Origin: Trichoplax adhaerens
Lineage: Eukaryota > Animalia > Placozoa
DNA length: 64,000 nucleotides
Direction of reading: 5' to 3'
Assembly: GCF_000150275.1 (NCBI RefSeq)
Contig: NW_002060943.1
Span: 2,076,987-2,140,986, forward strand
Below are positions 8,332 through 20,000 of the stretch, in pieces. The position numbers were made by a program, and so were the translations under genes. Under the pieces are notes generated by a model that worked only from the letters and a program-made list of their open reading frames with translations, did not search any database and was not told the origin of the DNA. How positions within the stretch are numbered: the stretch's first letter is position 1; every line of letters begins with the position of its first letter.

Positions 8332-9363
8332 ATGGATAGAAGAAATGCTACACTCTATTTTTCTTTACTAGCTAATATCATTTTCGCTTTTACCATTTAC
8401 TTCACTTTATTTCAGGCTGTAAATAAAAGGATGACCATGATGCAAGAACCATTTCTTGGTAATACATCAACTTTTATTCCATCAGTGAAGGGTCACAGTT
8501 TGAATGTATCTACAAATCTTCCACCCACTACCAAGTCCATAAATTTTACACCGGTTAAACTACGCTTTATGAAAGACAGCCCTGCCGCTAAACCTTGCAA
8601 AGGCAATATATTCATGTTATTGATGATAAATAGCGCTCCTAGAAATTACGAACGTAGATCTTCTATTCGAGAGACATGGGGTAAAGCTGATATTATACGA
8701 AGTGCCCTTGGAAATTATGTTTGGCGAACTATATTCATCATTGGTGATGGCCATAGTAAAAAAGTGAATGATGAAATGAATCAAGAAGCATTAAAATATG
8801 GCGATATGATTTTAGCTGATTTTGGCGATGATTTTCGTAATTTAACTTATAAGACCGTGTTGGGTATGGAATGGGCGAATGCTTATTGTAATGTAGCTAA
8901 ATACTTTTATAAAGGAGACGACGATGTAATGCTAAATCCATTTACTCTATTTCCTAAATTGGTATTTATGGAAGGTAAAAAATTATTCATGGGTAATATC
9001 ATGTCTGGTTCTGAAGTGGTTCGAGTAAAAAATAGTCGATACTACGTTAGTAAGGAAGATGTAGCTTCGTCGGTTTATTCTGATTATTGTTCGGGTTTTG
9101 CGTATGTTATTTCGATGGATGTATTACAAGCTATGGTAGCAGTCGTACCAAAAATTCGAAAGATACCTATTGATGATGCATATGTTGGTATGTTAGCAAA
9201 GGAAGTCAAGATTCCAGTTCATTGGGATCGAGGTTTTAAGCCATTTGGGCCGATTCCATCCAAAAAATGTGAATATAATACTGTTATTGCTGTTCACGGT
9301 ATTTTGCCTACTAAGCAAAAATCAATGATGATTGAAGCACGTAAAGCATTTTTAACTTGTTAG
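8332..9363 (+). CDS. GT31 family beta-1,3-glycosyltransferase, copy 3
   Basis: 343-aa ORF whose catalytic domain is nearly identical to copy 2; the stem region differs. Confidence 0.93.
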   Translation: MDRRNATLYFSLLANIIFAFTIYFTLFQAVNKRMTMMQEPFLGNTSTFIPSVKGHSLNVSTNLPPTTKSINFTPVKLRFMKDSPAAKPCKGNIFMLLMINSAPRNYERRSSIRETWGKADIIRSALGNYVWRTIFIIGDGHSKKVNDEMNQEALKYGDMILADFGDDFRNLTYKTVLGMEWANAYCNVAKYFYKGDDDVMLNPFTLFPKLVFMEGKKLFMGNIMSGSEVVRVKNSRYYVSKEDVASSVYSDYCSGFAYVISMDVLQAMVAVVPKIRKIPIDDAYVGMLAKEVKIPVHWDRGFKPFGPIPSKKCEYNTVIAVHGILPTKQKSMMIEARKAFLTC

Positions 9364-12155
9364 CTCTTTCAAATAGTACTTGTATCGAACATTTCGAAGA
9401 TCTTTACGTTCGTATATGGCGAATGGACATTGTTAAATACCCTATAACTAAAGGTTGATTTTGTCGATATATTTCTGTTTAATAATTTGAATTGATAGAC
9501 AATGTAAGATTGTGATGACATCAGTACAGGTGAAATACTGATAGTTGGTCTAGAATTATATTGAAATAATGTAGTAACGGTTATTATGTGCGTCCAGTAT
9601 TTGATTGACGATGATACTACTATTTCATTTCAATTGTACTCGTATATCTGGATATGATTTACAATATAAAATACTCTGCTCTCCATTTATGTCTTTCAAA
9701 TGCTCAATGATTTATCTTTCGGAATGCTATGATGCATATCACCGATAAAATTGTTACTTCAGATTGACTAAATTATTACCTTCGGAATCAACATAGCTTT
9801 ATAAATACACATGCAGTATTAGTGTTGTTAATCAATAGTAATTTGTAATATCTTAAAACACTCATCTTTTACGATATCCATTGCCAATATTTACAAAATG
9901 ATTTTTGCAATCTTAGCGTATACATAACTCGCAGTAGCGCCGTACATCTAGTTACTTTTAAATCTTTTAGCTGCCCTATTAATACATAAAGTGGTAATTT
10001 GCATTTTTAACAAAAAAGTTCAATCTCAATTACAGTAAAGTCAAAACAATTATTACTTTAGACCTTGCTGCAATTAAGTTCGTTCTAGAATTATGTGCAA
10101 GATAATACATCTTGGCTATATCATTCCTTCTTCCAATTAATTCATTACGATAAAATTGAACGTTATAGTTACATTTGTGGCGTCAGATCGCATGAAGAGT
10201 GTGTTCCATTTAGTGCAATACTAGCTTATGAAATTATTTTGTAATTGCACTTTCGTAACACGTCCAAAAATGAGTAGTTAGTATCTCTAGTATTTTTAGC
10301 AGCAGTTAAAGCGCTCTATGCTGCCAAAGGTTCGCAAGAAAAATGCGAATGTTTTGGCGATTAATTAAATCAATGGATAAGACAACTGTACCGTTGGTAA
10401 TGTGATTAAAATTTAGAAAGAGAATTTAGTTCGGCTCTGTAAAATAAAGTTTATTTAGGTGTATAGCTCAGATAACTCAACATAGAACTTGGATCTGGCG
10501 CTGTCGATTTAGCACAGAAATATCGCATGCTTTACTCTTACATTAGGGGTCACAATGTTAATAGACTATTTATATTAATTTTTTCTTGTTATTATTATAG
10601 TCTTTGTATATCTCCGAAGTGCTTTCAATACTAGTTTTTCCTGCTCTACAAGACTTATCTCAGAAAGGTGGATAAGTTTATGGTTTACGTGAGAAGTGCG
10701 AAAGGAGTTTCTCATCTGTCTGTTCACTGGCAACATCTGGTCATTATTTTACTGTACTGTATGCTTGCACACTGCAATTTGAATGGCAGGTCATCCGTCT
10801 ATCTGTATATCTGCAAGAGTCGCCTTGCCTGAACTACTTCACCAGGTGGTAGTCCATGGGTGTTGCCTGTATAAAATTTCTCGTGATCGAGAAATAGAAA
10901 ATTACAAATGTACACTGTACGTACAGTCGTGGACGCTCTATTACTAGATGATATGAATATCATATGATACTGTATATGTTGTAGTCCATGGTAAGGTAGT
11001 CAAATTTTTGAACAACAAAACTATTGGAACTGATTAAGTCGATAACGCGGCCCAAATAAAGTAAAATCATTGAATCTGTAGTAGAGAGCGTTAAAGGGCT
11101 TTAAAATTCTTATAATAGTTATACAGTACAGTACGCTATGGTCCATTAGCTACATCTTTTAGTATCTCTAAGTACGTTTGACCTTCGTTGGTTAGCAAGA
11201 GCTCACGAGCTTAGCTAGTTGCCAACTAAACCCTGACTTTTCAATGGCAGTGTTCATACGTTAATACCTCGTGGCCAGATGCCAGTCGAACTATTTTTTA
11301 CGATCGATTTCGCTCTACGGTAATACTGTACACAGTACAGTACAGTACTGCAGCAACAATTTAGACCGTACATGTATTAGAGAATCAGCTCACAAAGACT
11401 TCTATTCTAGATTTCCCTACAGCAAATCATTGAATCAAAATTCATGCCCACTGCCATGTACTGACTGACTGTACTGTATTACCTTTTAACGCGGTACAGT
11501 CCATAATAATAGACTCTGGCTGCTCGTCAATCTGACGAATCACGTAGAAGCGATAGCTGATAACTCGGCGATAAGATTACCGGTGTGATATCTGATAACT
11601 GGACCTTTGTAAAAACTGTCTTTAACTGTTCATACTAGGTGGCGAATCATTAGCTTACAGTACTATAATTTTTAGAAAAGAATATAAAAACAAATGGTAT
11701 CAAAATTACCTCGTTATGCAACACCCGCAATAGCTGCAAAGTAGAAATAATCACAACACTAAATACACCAGCTATGCGGTATAGTAACAAGTTTTAACAG
11801 TAGCACAATTCTGTGCTACAAAAATGGCAAACGCATTTTCAAAGGCCATTACTTGCACTTGTTAACTCAACCGGGCCAATCCAAAATTTCTAGTTGATAT
11901 TGTATAAATAGTATTTCTTTCGTGTCAAATCCAGGATATTTGCATATTGGTTATTCTTTCACTAAGGCTGAAGCAATAATAGAAGTCTACAAGTATTCCA
12001 TGTCCGCCACATTCTTGCTTGTCTTCCGAGTAAAGCTCTTCAAGCGCTAAACTTTCCAGAGCACTATCAAAGTCCACGCGCACACAGAAATTGTGAGTTT
12101 CACTGAAATTTCTTTAGTCCATACATGTTACATACACTTTTCCGATTGACTCTAC

Positions 12156-12371
12156 TGACGTCAGCGGATAAATTTCTAAAAATTCTATTATACTATACAC
12201 TCCATAGTGCATTGTAGTATGTACGAGTATAGTACAGTGATGGAAGATCGTTCGTCATTACATCGACAGAATCAATGACAAATATCTCATTCATTACATT
12301 GGGCAGTCGAGCTTATCTCTCGACGTCAAGTCATCTATAAATACGGGATGATCCATGCTAGGCTTCACTCC
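12156..12371 (+). promoter_or_regulatory. Putative core promoter of the HLH-HMG gene (CRE, TATA box, Inr)
   Basis: TGACGTCA at 12156-12163, TATAAATA at 12336-12343 and an Inr-like TCACTCC at 12365-12371 (A is 31 nt after the TATA start). The ATG is at 12499. Confidence 0.45.
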
Positions 12372-12498
12372 ATTAGCTTCAGTTTCACATACGGATCAAT
12401 TGTAGGTCATTTTTTCTTCGTGGTTCTCCAAAACGATTCAGTTTTCGCAATTTGTTGCAAATTTTGTATATGCAATCCTTTCAAACTATTTGCTAATC

Positions 12499-15400
12499 AT
12501 GGATAATCACCAACTTTCCAATTTAAACTTCGAGCCAGTGAGCTACTTTATAGGAAATGGATCGGAAAATACCGTGTTAAACGATTGGGATCCATTTGTT
12601 TGCTCTGTTGAAACTACATTTCAACTACCTTTAGCGAGCGAAGTAAACGATTTAGGTAAGTTTTTGGCAATATCAAGATTGAAAAATTCTCAGATTAAAC
12701 GTAGTGGCTAAGTTAGGAGATAAATGCTAGTATATTCCTGCCATTATAATTATTAAAGATGATCTGTCGCAAGCAGCCTCATAGTAAATATACTCTTTTT
12801 CAGTCAATTCTGCTGCATAGATAGATTTCATTTATACGCGCATTTCTATCGCATCATAGAAATTAAAATTCTTTCTAAGATTGATGCAAATACCATTATT
12901 GCAACAGCTGAATTTCCATTACCTTATTCAGTCAATAATAAGAAGGAAAAACTACTATTTGCACTAAGTTATAACCAAGAATAGAGTATCATAAAATTAT
13001 GTAACTTGGTTGATTTAGCTCTACTGCAGATTGTGTTGCATAAATCACTAGAGAATTTCAGTGTTTATGTCATGAAAGCTTTTTCTCTATTTCCAACATT
13101 TTTCTATGTCATAGTTGACCTTACTAATAACACGTGTTGACTGGACCAGTGAAGTCCGTAAATCATACGTGCTACAGAATGCGTCGAATATTTACGCTAT
13201 TGTTTATACGAAATATCAACATCAGTCTTGTAAGAAACTGTATGGAGTTTATATATACGATACCCTATACTATACTGTATTGTAGTCAACCACATGGAAA
13301 ACAATAGACAGTATCAGTGATAAGGGATCCTATTCAGTTGTCGTCACGTGGCGTTGATGTAGCGTTTGATATATGGAGACTAGACCTTTATGGTAAATTG
13401 CGATCCATTCTGCAACAATCGTTAATATGAAATTTTAACCGATCCAGATAGTGCAAATCTGAATGATCATGGAATTGGATATCCTAGTAGTGAGAAAGAG
13501 GAATATGCAATAAATGATGCTAAAAACGTGGAAAATACTACAAATCATAATTTACCTACCGCGGTAATGTCATCGTGTCCAAGTAGAATATTTCGTGCAA
13601 TTCCTTTTCCAGATTTCGATACATCCGTCTATAACGATCTGTCTGAGGATGAGTTGTTTAACCAGCTGAGGTATTTGGTAATGACAGGTGACAGACCAAA
13701 TGCTTCTGGAGTGTCGAAGGTAAGATCTGATATCCATAATATAAGAGAATGCTGTTAATCGAGTTTAGAGTGGATTTTTACATTCATACTAGACGTTAAT
13801 TGTACTGCCGCATATCACACATTGCTGAATCAGTTATTTTCCTTTACGAGAGAGCTCAGAAAAGATTATTACATTCATACTAGAGGTTAATTCTAGTTCT
13901 ATTTATTGCATATCACACATACAGTTAAATCAGCTATTTTTCTTTACGAGTAAGGAGAAGCTCTTAGCAGGGACTTCTCGATAAAAAATGATTTCTCAAA
14001 AATGAAAGAAAGAGAACAGCAGGAAACGAGTTCACAGTACAATGTCCTCACTTTTTTTCCATTTTTGAGGAATCATTTTTATCGAGAAGTCCCCTAACCT
14101 TAGTTTTTACTAGACGATAATTCTACCTCAATACATATCACAGAGTTGAATCGGTTATTTTCCCCTACGAGAGCTAGGAGGGGATTTTTATATTCATACT
14201 AGAGGTTAGTTTTAGTTTATATTGATAGGTAAATAATATTTTACAGCAATGCTGTTACCTGTATGATAATCATATATACACTACATATATAAGTTAATTC
14301 TGCAACAAATTAATCTATCAGAACAGTTGCTGAAATGATTGTAAATCATTTGCTAGATGTTTCATCAAATGCAATTTATACGTATATATGTATTAGGTCG
14401 CAATACTACAAGCTGCTATTCAATACATTTCGCAAGTATCTTACGGTAAGAAACCTATACACCTCATTTACACAATTCAACTAGTATGAGCAATCTACTT
14501 TAAGGCCCATTTTTCTATATCACTGAGCGGTTAAAGATAACTAGCTTGGAATAAAAAGGCTCAATTTATATTCATAGAAAAAGATCAAACTGCTGAAGAA
14601 AGTAATTTCAAACCTGCCATAAAAGCGTAAGATATTTTTTAAAAATTACTGTCCTAAAATAATGCTATAAAAATGAGAGACTATCTAAAATGAGAAAAAT
14701 GACTTATGATTTGGATGAATAAATTATAAAGTTAGATGTAAGGAGAAAATTGAATGTCATTACAATGCAAATGCATTAAAAATTTTCCAATTAATGTTTT
14801 AGTGATATCCAAAGTATTCTAGATGAAAGTCTACAGTACCCATATTGTGCTCAAGCTCAGGAATCAGGTTATGGTAGTCTAACTCCATCTATAAATAGCA
14901 ATCCATCTTCGGCTAGGGAAACTCCTGTTGACATAGAGGATACTGCAAATTTAGAAACTTTGAAGGAGCTGAATTCGATCAATTTTCCTGATGTAACTAG
15001 TATATTTAAGCATGACAGCAACGTTAAAAGCAAGATCGTTAAACCAAAAAGAAAATATCGTAAAAGGCAAGTAGTTGATAAAAAAGGTAATAGCTGTATT
15101 CGCACCGCACTTGATGATGAAACTGCAGGAGATGGGTGCAAACGAAAACATCGCACATATCAGAACCATAAGAAGAATACTCTACACCCTAAGAATTCAC
15201 TTGCTAGAATAAAGTATTTAAGGAATCAAGGAAGGAAAAAGATGAATGGGTGAACACAATAAGGATAATAATCATTCATAGTGAAATAGCAAAATAGCAA
15301 AAGATAATTGAAAATAGGGATGAGTCAATCTTAAGAATTTTTTCTTAAATTCTTTATCTTGGGCAGATATATGCTGTTTAGCAGAGTCATGCGGCCAAAA

Positions 15401-16226
15401 ATTAGGTCTTATCTACCTGAAATCCGTATGCCTGATTGCGTTTGTATGATGGCTAGACTGTGGAATGATTTACCAGAGCGCTATAAAGCACCTTTTAATG
15501 ATGCAGCCCTAAGAATTCGTTTAGATACTAAAATGAAAGTGCAGAAAGGGGTACGTGAAGGCGTCTCTACAACTTTGAAATTTAATTACATGGGTTATCC
15601 TCTAGCTTAATAATGAAAGATAACCAATTGAACACCGCCAATTACTTATTTTTATACGCTTTCATTCACAGATTGGGGAATTCCGCGCTAATAATAATAG
15701 AATTAATGAAATATTAAAACCCTATCTCGCCGATTCAGATCTTGTAAAAATGCTAGACAGACTTGCTAGTTGTTGCAAGCAGGATTGCGGTAAGTAGAGA
15801 AATGATTGCGTTTTTCTCTTACGTTTTAATAAAAAGAATTATAGATTATAAATTATACATTAATTTTTATTTGGTGTAAGTGCATTACTGAATACATTAT
15901 GTAAACATATCTTGTACGCATACAAGTAAAACTAAGGTTATTAGCCTATTTTCTCAAATATACTCTCATATCTTTATTATCGTCGTTGGAGCAGAGCATT
16001 TAAATTCTAGCATTATTGACGGATTACGCAACAAATCCGCTTAATAATTTAGCTTATAACAATTAAATTCTAATTACAATATTGCAAATTAGGTTACTAC
16101 GTATTAGCAGGAACAGAAATTGTGACTAGCTAGATTGATGCCATGACGTAGCAGAATTTATCATAGCTGCAGTATTTTTTTTTAGGAATGTTAATTTGTC
16201 ATGAATCTTTACTTGATTCTGAATAA
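12499..16226 (+). CDS. HLH + HMG-box protein (MEIOSIN/BHMG1- or STRA8-like architecture), 8 exons, 438 aa
   Basis: Exons 12499-12655, 13448-13719, 14397-14445, 14578-14626, 14803-15249, 15367-15550, 15672-15789 and 16186-16226 are all GT-AG with compatible phases and total 1317 nt. HLH: ELFNQLRYLV-loop-SK|VAILQAAIQYISQV. HMG box: RKKMNG|YMLFSRVMRPKIRSYLPEIRMPDCVCMMARLWNDLPERYKAPF. NLS-like KPKRKYRKR lies between them. Confidence 0.8.
13772..14210. repeat. Degenerate ~90-bp tandem repeat in intron 2 of the HLH-HMG gene
   Basis: Recurring unit ggatttttacattcatactaga(c/g)gttaatt...catatcaca...gaatc(a/g)gttatttt...tacgag starting near 13772, 13863, 14108 and 14182. Confidence 0.75.
13970..14093. 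mobile_element. MITE-like element (~124 bp) with ~40-45-bp imperfect terminal inverted repeats
   Basis: Left end gggacttctcgataaaaaatgatttctcaaaaatg matches the reverse complement of right end catttttgaggaatcatttttatcgagaagtccc; the element interrupts the tandem repeat. Confidence 0.65.
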
Positions 16227-17044
16227 CAAGTTTGCGGCAAGACTTTTAATTTCTGGTCGGCAGAAAATAAGTACCCTTGATGATCTCGTTTTGGTTATCA
16301 CAAGAAAACTATTTAAAAAGATAAATTTTTCCATATTTCTGGATGGTACAGTGAAGAATTTATAAAGCGTTATAACTTTAAGACTACCAAAGGCCACTTT
16401 ACACTTTTTGTTAGCAAATTTTAAAATTATAGAAACGGTTTACTTTCTAAAAGATACGCCTTGTTAGCAGTCTAGGTTACATATAGGTAGAATTGAAACA
16501 AGCTGACTTTCTGATATTGAAAAGCTCTCAGCGATATAATTTTTGTATTTTATGCATTTCGTAAATAATTTCAAGGTATCAGTATGACAGATGGAAGCAG
16601 TTCAATATATCTTTTGAAATATAATATTTTTTCTTTGCTACGAAATAAATAAAGTTATCTGGTGAATATAAAAGCGATATAAAAATTTCATTTGATCTTC
16701 TACTCATTTTCTTTTCTTAAAAGATTTCATAAAATATAGCATACAAGTATACGTATATTATACATTTGTACGCGAAATACTTGGAAAGTTACGAGCATTT
16801 ATACAATAATTAACGATTGTTTAACTGCCAGCTCTGTCGAAAACATAATCAGTATTATAGATGCTCCATATTACACGCGTAATGATTTGACTTTAATTAA
16901 GAACATTAACAATATTTGTATTTGATTAGTGCAATATACAGACTTTAGTAATATTTTAAGCCACGGCAGTCAAGCATTTTCGACATAGTACGTTATTCCA
17001 CTTTAGCTTAGTGTAACTTGGAAGAGGAGATTCCAGCTCAATCA

Positions 17045-20000
17045 TTACGTTCTCTTCAAAACTCGATCAAGCTGGTTTACAAAATTCGAAAGTTAGTGCG
17101 AAATAATTTTACATGCGATTAATTAGAAAAGCTTATTATTCATACCTCTTTAGGACTGAATTGTAGAATAGTTGCAATAGCTTTAACTATTTGCAGTTTG
17201 CTTATAGGATTATCGGCCTCCATATAATGAAGGACGATATTTTTAAGATATTCTAAATTGGCCGTCTCACGAGATCTGTATCGCAGCAATGAAATACCAA
17301 AATTGTCATCATAGCATCTAATTACAATAACTGCCAATTATGCTATACTATTATATCACTAACTTATCTCGTTCCAGTTTTCTAATTTCCTCCTTTAAGG
17401 CTTTACATAAATCTAAGTGAGTTTGTTCTCTGAATAACAGAATGGCATTTCCAAATGAGGAAATAAGACAGTATTTATCTCTTTAGGAAGATATAAATTC
17501 TTACCTTTTTGCTAAATCTCGCATTTCCTCCTCTAGTTCAAATTTTGACTTCCTCAAAGAAGTCAATTCGATTTCTACCTTAGCCTGTTCTTGTTGATAA
17601 TGTAACAAGATTCCATCTCGACTTGATACCTAATTTAACGCACCGATGATAGTAGAAGTTGTTATCTACAAGCTCTAAACAGAGCCCACTTTAAAAATAA
17701 AGATATAACTTAAAAGATTCTTACTGTAGCGGTAGCAGGCATAGACAGCAGTCTATTTACCGCATCCTCCGTGACCTCGCCGCTGAACTAATAAATAGAA
17801 TATTTGTACATTTATTCTCAATGAAAGCAACCAAAAGTCCTATAATGTAACCAAAACCATCTACAATGCTTATCTACGTACAAGATGACTCCCTTCAAAT
17901 GATACCGTTCTATTCATACTTTCTGTAAAAGATTGTAGATTTTGTATCAAATTTGGCTCTTAACATTTAACGACGTTAAAGTATCAAGAATTCCGAGATT
18001 GGCAGAATACCTTTAGAATCAGCTAATATGTCACGTGAATATCGGCGAGATATTCTGCTTGGTATTGGCAATAAATAGTCGGTGCTGCCAGTTAAAAATA
18101 TATTGTACATGATATTTTAATGATTTTGCTACTAAAGTGGCTGTGCCTATCAGACGGCGGTATATAATAAAAAAGGTAAATAATCATCGAAACCTATAAC
18201 TGGTTTGAAGGGCGCTGTTGCCGAGGCTACCATTAGTATTTGTATTGGTCTTTAACTGATCGACCTCTGCTTCCTTATCCGCTAACAATTCAATAGTTCG
18301 TTCACGTTGTCTTTGCATTTGCTTTCTTGCTTCGTCAAGTTTCGCCTGAATACGTAAGCCAGTAAAGTGAATTATGGCATTAAAAATTTTTAGAGCTATA
18401 CTACCCAAAAGAGAACTCCTACCAATGATTCGCTTTTTATCTTGTTAATATCATTATCAAACTTTCCCTGCATATCTTTGATTTCAACTTTAAAATAATT
18501 TATCTGCAGTATGTAAGTTAATTAGTAATTCAATTATATAGAAGGCAAAATCGTACTTCCGTAAATATTGCTATACCGATTCTTTATATTCCTTTTCTTT
18601 TCCTTCAAACCAGCTTCTCTCCGAAATAAGCTTGTTGTTTAGTTCTACAACCTGACGCTGCAAGCTACGATATTCCTTAATATTGAGATCCTGTGAAGGA
18701 AAGATATTTACTGTTTAATACAGAGGATGTTCTATTAACTTATGTACGTATACGAGGGTAAAATTTTACCTGGCTTCTGCTTTTCGCATGTAATTGAGTT
18801 TGAGACTTAAATTTCTCAAAATCTTCCTTAACCTGAGCTAGTTCTCGCTTACACAACTATTTTGAGAATTAATATTATACTGTATCAGATTTTACGGGAA
18901 ATACGCTCGTATATATAATTACTGTATTAATACCTGATAAGCTAATTGTGGATCTTCTACTTCCTCATCTACGCATAGCAAATTCCCCAATAGATTGTCA
19001 AGGTTTATAATTAGACCGATTGATGGCAAAATACTAGTAATGGCGCTCTAGCATACAGAAACAGTAGTAGAATATTATGTCTTACGTGATGAGGCTTGAT
19101 TACGTTGGTTTGCTTCAAGGCTTTCGTCCTGTAGTATGAAGATTTTATTATTATTTATAATTATAATTATTGACAGTTACTTTGTTAAAACGATTCAACA
19201 AAATAAGCTCACAGGTTGTTGATATGGAGTATTCGATTCCTTTTGTGATAATTTTTGATACCTAATTTTAGAAATAGAAAATGTGATGTTACGAAAACTT
19301 ACATGTTTCCTAGACTATTTTAGAATGGGATAAACTTACTCCAGTTGTTGGCTGACTTTGGTGGATGTCTCTGTTAAGGATGTATTCTCAACATTTAACT
19401 GCAATACCTTTTCCTTCAAGCGTCTAAAAGTTAATTTGATCTAAAATATAATTAAGCTGCCAACTACCGTAATTATAATCATTTCTAGTGATTTACAGTA
19501 CTGTAGTACAATATAGCATCACGTTATGCGCATATTACTATTTTCTACCTAATTGTAATTTGATCTCGTTCTTTTTCGCGCTCAGATACTCCAATTAAAT
19601 CTGATAATTCTGAAACTTTTCTTTCTAAATCTGCTACTCTGTACTCGTCTCTGTGTGCCATATCACGAATTCGATTCTTAGAGTCTTGCAAACGCTGTTG
19701 TTCATTGGCTAACTCTTCCATATGCTGAGCCTTAGAATATACATATATTGATATATGACAGTCATTAAAGTTGCTTTCTAGATCATTATCGAGTGCATCA
19801 ATGAAAACAAATAAACAACAAATTTACCCTAAGTTCATCAAGGTCCTGTTGTAATTTCGTTTCTGCAGCAGTCGGTTGGTTTTTATATTTTTCGAGCTCA
19901 TTAATCTTAGTCTCCGCATTCTTGGTACATATGAATGTATTAGGTAATCATTCAGTTAGTCATCCAACATATTAAAACGCGATAACAACCTAATATGTAT

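Follow-up and report, generated by a model that had tools for sequence, protein, structure and literature searches.

A spliced Trichoplax adhaerens gene with an HMG box and a probable helix-loop-helix

The gene in this report lies in a 64,000-nucleotide (nt) stretch of the Trichoplax adhaerens genome (contig NW_002060943.1, positions 2,076,987 to 2,140,986 of the forward strand), which we call the window and whose numbering is used throughout. Eight exons on its plus strand, between 12499 and 16226, are best explained as one real, spliced placozoan gene whose product would be a nuclear transcription factor built of three conserved modules, a reading to which we give a probability of about 65%. 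The first module would be a divergent helix-loop-helix (HLH; about residues 117 to 157), in which acidic residues take the place of the basic region and which would serve dimerization only, with the protein itself or another HLH protein as partner and no contact with an E-box. The second would be a single divergent HMG box (about residues 319 to 386), which follows basic clusters resembling a nuclear localization signal (NLS) and would bind and bend DNA, and the third a conserved C-terminal tail of 52 residues. The HLH fold, dimerization, sequence-specific binding, and nuclear location are predictions from sequence.

The initial annotation of the locus had proposed that a gene with both an HLH and an HMG box was hidden among fragments of open reading frames (ORFs). 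That proposal has held up, with a statistically significant HMG box, a probable HLH, and RNA contigs that contain the critical splice.

Gene structure, splicing, and the HMG box

An exon-by-exon computation joins the eight exons in frame into 1317 nt, that is, 438 codons followed by a TAA stop. All seven introns have GT..AG ends with pyrimidine-rich acceptors, none of the exons contains an internal stop, and the surroundings are AT-rich eukaryotic DNA. The coordinates first proposed for this 438-residue model were correct to the base, and translation recovered all of the peptides cited for it. Exons 2 and 6 each occur once in the Trichoplax genome, where exon 2 matches only itself.

RNA evidence was taken from Logan contigs of four runs, aligned to positions 11700 to 17200. 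Runs X7, X9, and X12 come from three studies for which no culture state or tissue is recorded; contig depth is about 2 to 12, and such contigs cannot rank expression. Five of the seven joints were seen spliced in RNA-derived contigs. The joint between exons 1 and 2 is present in contigs of X7 and X9, the X7 contig starting at 12479, and that between exons 5 and 6 is present in contigs of the same two runs. Contigs of X9 and X12 carry the joint between exons 6 and 7, and an X9 contig carries that between exons 7 and 8, where a synonymous C>T at 15788 shifted the aligner's joint by two bases. Spliced RNA joining 13719 to 14397, which had been put forward as a check on the proposal, is found in an X9 contig with 31 nt of exon 3 on its short side. 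One X9 contig begins exactly at 14803, the first base of exon 5. Run X4 was dropped as splicing evidence; because its contigs cover introns and show no joints, we took it as DNA or pre-mRNA. The locus is an expressed, spliced gene with low expression.

The later spliced HMG box of the initial annotation was confirmed by exon 6 alone, which passes the Pfam gathering score for HMG_box (PF00505) with 35.6 bits (cut-off 25.4; E = 1.3e-8) over profile positions 8 to 59 of 69, and both joints flanking this exon are among those seen in RNA. The first seven profile positions fall at the end of exon 5 (RKKMNG), and the box motif RKKMNG/YMLFSR is split across the joint of exons 5 and 6, marked here by the slash. 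Position 6 of the box is an Asn within M-N-x-aromatic-M, both in the window (RKKMNG/YMLF) and in the other placozoan described below (RKRMNG/YMLF). An Asn at this position marks the sequence-specific SOX/TCF/MATA class, as in the SRY and LEF-1 complexes, whereas HMGB and UBF boxes have a Ser. This Asn suggests that the Trichoplax box belongs to the sequence-specific class.

The similarity scores point the other way. The protein shares with the SOX/TCF/MATA factors, including fission-yeast Ste11, a single HMG box starting M-N-x-(F/Y)-M-x-(F/W), but it differs from them in that exon 6, searched against PDB sequences, is closer to the boxes of UBF1 (E = 6e-5) and HMGB3 (E = 3e-4) than to those of SOX9 and SOX30 (E = 0.015 to 0.018). 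Judged from exon 6 alone, the box would be nearest to UBF/HMGB-type boxes, which argues against the sequence-specific class and so weighs against that part of our reading. The closest HMG paralogue that Trichoplax has shares no more than 29% identity with exon 6, and an ESM Atlas search with this exon returned generic HMG clusters only. The proposal of a meiotic factor had been made to depend on whether the box groups with the SOX, TCF, HMGB, or CIC families, and on this the outcome is divided: the Asn is that of SOX/TCF/MATA, the best similarity is to UBF1 and HMGB3, and, since these two outscore SOX9 and SOX30 and the best paralogue is so distant, the box falls firmly in no family.

A HMMER search with exon 6 among 1.84 billion representatives (E <= 1e-3) gave one single-box match, the placozoan piece P0001 (66 residues, 78% identical), which itself scores 28.9 bits against Pfam HMG_box; all other matches are multi-box proteins whose score sums several boxes. 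The nearest named HMG proteins, from Colponema, Capsaspora, and a diatom, are generic multi-box HMGB-like protist proteins, and their names gave no family assignment. The search found no relative with HLH and HMG, or with a single box, outside placozoans, and no relatives of exon 6 turned up in JGI metagenome contigs. Judged by sequence, the gene can be detected in placozoans only.

Word-indexed protein searches, which cover a length window with full-length proteins outside it, gave no candidate for exon 1, no match for exon 2, and for exon 5 the placozoan piece P0099 only. P0001 and P0099 sit on the Logan contigs L001 and L002; because the exons on these contigs are about 70% identical in DNA to those of Trichoplax, their source was taken as another placozoan. 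L002 holds counterparts of exons 4 to 8 that agree in length or phase and in their splice sites (identities in Table 1). Exon 5 contains short, strongly conserved blocks (DIQSILD, ESGY, NSNPSSARETPVD, and KRKYRKRQ) amid poorly conserved sequence, and these may be short linear motifs and an NLS. The 52 residues past the HMG box, encoded by exons 7 and 8, are conserved in the two placozoans, match no Pfam family, and make up a conserved module.

The putative helix-loop-helix

Since intron 2 splits the domain, the HLH was tested in separate pieces, against Pfam HLH (PF00010, gathering score 20.7 bits) and against a profile and a position matrix built from 19 basic HLH (bHLH) boxes of the same genome. 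For the stop-free 30-residue piece that starts at exon 3, HLH was the only Pfam family matched, at profile positions 39 to 52 of 53. Helix 2 in exon 3 scored 11.6 bits against the Trichoplax bHLH hidden Markov model (HMM; E = 1e-5 for one sequence). Its 11-mer scored 17.5 bits on the matrix, within the range of divergent real boxes (15.9 to 18.8), and is alone in reaching that score among the 59,342 stop-free 11-mers in the six frames of the window. The core F..LR..V of helix 1 and the terminal SK of the loop are in register with helix 2. The assignment of the 49-nt exon at 14397 to 14445 to helix 2 is therefore sustained by the exclusive Pfam match, by the unique top 11-mer, and by the joint to the helix-1 exon in RNA, and the HLH fold is likely to be real.

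The alternative that survives best is that the HLH is a chance look-alike and that the protein is an orphan, placozoan-specific factor with a single HMG box and a disordered N-terminal half. We regard this as unlikely, although a number of results weigh in its favor and against an HLH. The signal is carried by only the 14 residues of helix 2, and against Pfam HLH the helix-2 piece reaches 11.7 bits (E = 0.24), below the cut-off. The helix-1 16-mer scores 1.3 bits on the matrix, which places it in the top 0.1% of random 16-mers, compared with 20 to 43 bits for real boxes, and its local HMM score is negative. The residues ahead of helix 1 (DFDTSVYNDLSEDE) include no Arg or Lys, the basic region being replaced by the acidic DLSEDE. 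Exon 2 alone gave no match in Pfam, no usable one in the ESM Atlas, and only a chance match in PDB (E = 1.5). No orthologue of exons 1 to 3 was found in the word-indexed searches with exons 1 and 2 or in the metagenome scan; L001 and L002 stop short of these exons, L002 ending 34 nt upstream of exon 4. Against a chance origin stand the uniqueness of the helix-2 match among about 59,000 11-mers of the window, its start with the opening codon of an exon confirmed in RNA, and the restriction of the Pfam matches of this piece to HLH. Furthermore, F..LR..V and SK precede it at the right distance, a combination with a joint chance on the order of 1e-4 if the helix-2 match is taken as given.

Two other searches bear on the domain. 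The helix-2 piece had no match in a PDB sequence search, and a six-frame search of the whole genome with Pfam HLH did not pick up the locus; only the best candidates of that search were scored, and its result is uninformative. The contig L001 was considered as a source of the upstream exons and rejected, since its first 340 nt or so are GC-rich, unlike L002, to which L001 is 99.5% identical afterwards; positions 1 to 340 of L001 are probably a chimeric assembly end.

If the HLH is real, it would be a dimerization-only HLH: since it has no basic region, dimerization would be expected and contact with an E-box would not. In this it would be like the Id and Emc proteins, HLH proteins without a basic region that are expected to dimerize without touching DNA, and the helix-2 pattern SK-V.ILQ..I.YI presumably resembles that of Id proteins as well. 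Id proteins are short chains that lack any further domain for binding DNA, whereas the Trichoplax chain runs for about 280 more residues and includes an HMG box. With this box on the same chain, the protein would be more than a purely dominant-negative factor of the Id kind.

Exon 3 starts exactly after SK, at an intron of phase 0; the intron that interrupts the HMG box is of phase 2 and falls in the Gly codon of MNG/Y. The split Trichoplax bHLH genes that we examined (Max-like, USF-like, SREBP-like, and Hes/Hey-like) include none with a stop-free piece starting at this point, and their nearest piece starts are 2 to 3 residues off. The position of the intron within the HLH gives no usable signal of origin.

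Intron 2 itself (13720 to 14396) contains three copies of a unit of about 100 nt, with repeat families of 35 to 66 nt that are 76 to 82% alike, and a 28-nt inverted repeat at 13984 to 14011 and 14053 to 14080. These repeats look like a small repeat or an insert resembling a miniature inverted-repeat transposable element (MITE) within the intron between the two halves of the HLH.

Comparison with MEIOSIN and STRA8

Mouse MEIOSIN (BHMG1, Gm4969) has 589 residues, with a bHLH at residues 10 to 70 and an HMG domain at 484 to 534; STRA8 has an HLH at 17 to 84 and an HMG-like region, and the bHLH domains mediate the interaction of the two proteins (PMC13637641). The working model for MEIOSIN is that the HLH serves partner binding and the HMG domain binds DNA, and its orthologues have been described in vertebrates only, more distant species lying outside the analysis (PMC13637641). 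Ste11 is cited in the same paper as an HMG-based regulator of meiotic entry (PMC13637641). In the literature searched, MEIOSIN is essentially the only protein for which a combination of HLH and HMG is discussed.

Compared by description only, the Trichoplax protein is like MEIOSIN in having an N-terminal HLH-type domain, a C-terminal single HMG box, and a long domain-free stretch between them. The order of HLH and then HMG follows from frame arithmetic, with the HLH only probable and no RNA contig joining exon 3 to exon 5. The two proteins differ in domain placement (residues 117 to 157 and 319 to 386 of 438 in Trichoplax, compared to 10 to 70 and 484 to 534 of 589 in MEIOSIN), and the domain of MEIOSIN is described as a bHLH, whereas the basic region of the Trichoplax protein is acidic. 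The likeness to STRA8 is that of an HLH protein whose HLH mediates pairing with MEIOSIN and for which an HMG-like region has been reported (PMC13637641); the difference is that the Trichoplax genome has no paralogue of exon 2 to form a pair of the MEIOSIN/STRA8 kind. The resemblance to MEIOSIN would thus be one of architecture alone.

The LFNQLR of exon 2 resembles an LFNNLR that the initial annotation places in helix 1 of STRA8. It carries no specific signal, because F..LR is general in helix 1 of the aligned Trichoplax bHLH boxes.

The initial annotation had read the gene as a candidate deep homologue of these factors. It is doubtful that the gene is a deeply diverged member of the MEIOSIN/STRA8 lineage, with an HLH+HMG factor for meiotic entry older than vertebrates, and similarly doubtful that, as such a lineage would imply, placozoan germ cells were switched from mitosis to meiosis by HLH pairing and HMG binding at promoters. 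The idea draws on a domain pair and a domain order shared with mouse MEIOSIN (PMC13637641), on the near-exclusive association of this combination with MEIOSIN in the literature, on the fact that the authors of the MEIOSIN study did not analyze non-vertebrate species (PMC13637641), and on the single-copy state of the gene and the conservation of its exons 4 to 8 across placozoans. However, the likeness is one of domain descriptions, and the basic region is lacking. The exon 6 search among 1.84 billion representatives found no MEIOSIN-type orthologue in the intervening animal phyla and, at E <= 1e-3, no HLH+HMG or single-box relative in other phyla; the PDB searches with exons 2 and 6 and the helix-2 piece gave no match relevant to MEIOSIN; of the 42 Pfam families in the 97 HMG proteins nearest to exon 6, the 25 commonest do not include HLH; and the genome has no paralogue of exon 2 to act as a second HLH protein in the part of STRA8. 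Domain shuffling, by which HLH and HMG modules were brought together, is explanation enough. There is nothing to connect the gene with meiosis, because the RNA contigs contain its transcripts from cultures and tissues whose state is not on record.

Transcript continuity, locus features, and meaning of the gene

Exons 1 to 3 and exons 5 to 8 are strongly indicated by the sequence to belong to one transcript. Skipping of exon 4 breaks the reading frame, which requires an exon of 3n+1 nt at this place, and exon 4 has no in-frame ATG. Exon 5 is conserved coding sequence from its first base, yet it has no in-frame ATG before the Met of RKKMNG near its end. In the other placozoan, exon 4 has a counterpart of 49 nt at positions 35 to 83 of L002, bordered by AG and GTAAGT. 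We infer one gene because the frame needs exon 4, because no ATG lies ahead of the HMG-box motif, because an X9 contig begins exactly at the exon 5 border, and because exon 4 is conserved. On the other side, no RNA contig covers the joints of exons 3 and 4 or exons 4 and 5 at depths of about 2 to 12, and the HLH and HMG exons have not yet been seen on one molecule, both of which count against a single gene. Two separate genes, a short HLH-only gene like Id (exons 1 to 3) and an HMG-box gene (exons 5 to 8), would fit the missing bridge from exon 3 to exon 5 and the stop that is reached 14 codons into read-through of the exon 3 donor, but they are highly improbable, given that neither exon 4 nor the conserved coding part of exon 5 up to the Met that immediately precedes the HMG box offers a start codon and that exon 4 restores the frame exactly, with its length and splice sites kept in L002.

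The coordinates of the exons and their features, together with the identities to the other placozoan, are collected in Table 1.

Table 1. Exons and features of the Trichoplax gene, in window coordinates, with amino-acid identities to the counterparts in the other placozoan (P0099 / L002 for exon 5, L002 for exons 6 to 8)
Feature	Position	Length	Strand	Content	Identity
Exon 1	12499-12655	157 nt	+	ATG at 12499; residues 1-52 plus one base	
Exon 2	13448-13719	272 nt	+	Residues 53-143, N-terminal region, closing with putative helix 1 and the loop	
Putative helix 1	13639-13683		+	Core F..LR..V after acidic DLSEDE	
Putative HLH loop	13684-13719		+	Ends in SK, at the end of exon 2	
Exon 3	14397-14445	49 nt	+	Putative HLH helix 2 at 14397-14438, peptide VAILQAAIQYISQV	
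Exon 4	14578-14626	49 nt	+	Linker exon restoring the frame	
Exon 5	14803-15249	447 nt	+	Conserved blocks, NLS-like cluster, first HMG-box residues	48%
Basic NLS-like cluster in exon 5	about 15041-15067		+		
HMG-box start in exon 5	15233-15249		+	RKKMNG	
Exon 6	15367-15550	184 nt	+	Main part of the HMG box	79%
Exon 7	15672-15789	118 nt	+	Conserved C-terminal tail past the HMG box	68%
Exon 8	16186-16226	41 nt	+	Last 12 residues and TAA stop	92% (11/12 residues)

A GRIP-domain gene on the minus strand (15860 to 18408) is convergent with the gene; its ORF at 17143 to 17337 matches PF01465 (E = 2e-16), and it has an intron at 17072 to 17145. Contigs with this minus-strand intron (CT..AC) reach down to 15860 to 15966, overlapping exon 8 and intron 7. 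From 16538 to 17797, over 1.3 kb, the sequence is 66% alike in the two placozoans, and long ORFs are absent from much of this segment. Upstream, on the plus strand at 8332 to 9360, is a single-exon ORF of 343 residues with a Galactosyl_T domain (PF01762, E = 7.6e-44).

The full-length product of the gene was not found in the protein collections searched, which may lack the records of this genome, and the gene may be missing from the catalogues of Trichoplax transcription factors.

A placozoan gene with HLH and HMG would extend beyond vertebrates a pair of domains otherwise reported only for MEIOSIN, which initiates meiosis in vertebrates. One meaning could be the independent invention of a dimerizing HMG-box factor, a case of convergent architecture; the other could be a relic of an ancient regulator of meiotic entry. 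Should the gene belong to the MEIOSIN/STRA8 lineage, a long shot on present evidence, it would be the first non-vertebrate member, and an HLH+HMG regulator would predate the split between placozoans and the line leading to vertebrates. It would then also provide a molecular marker and a switch for meiotic entry in placozoans, whose sexual cycle is barely known.

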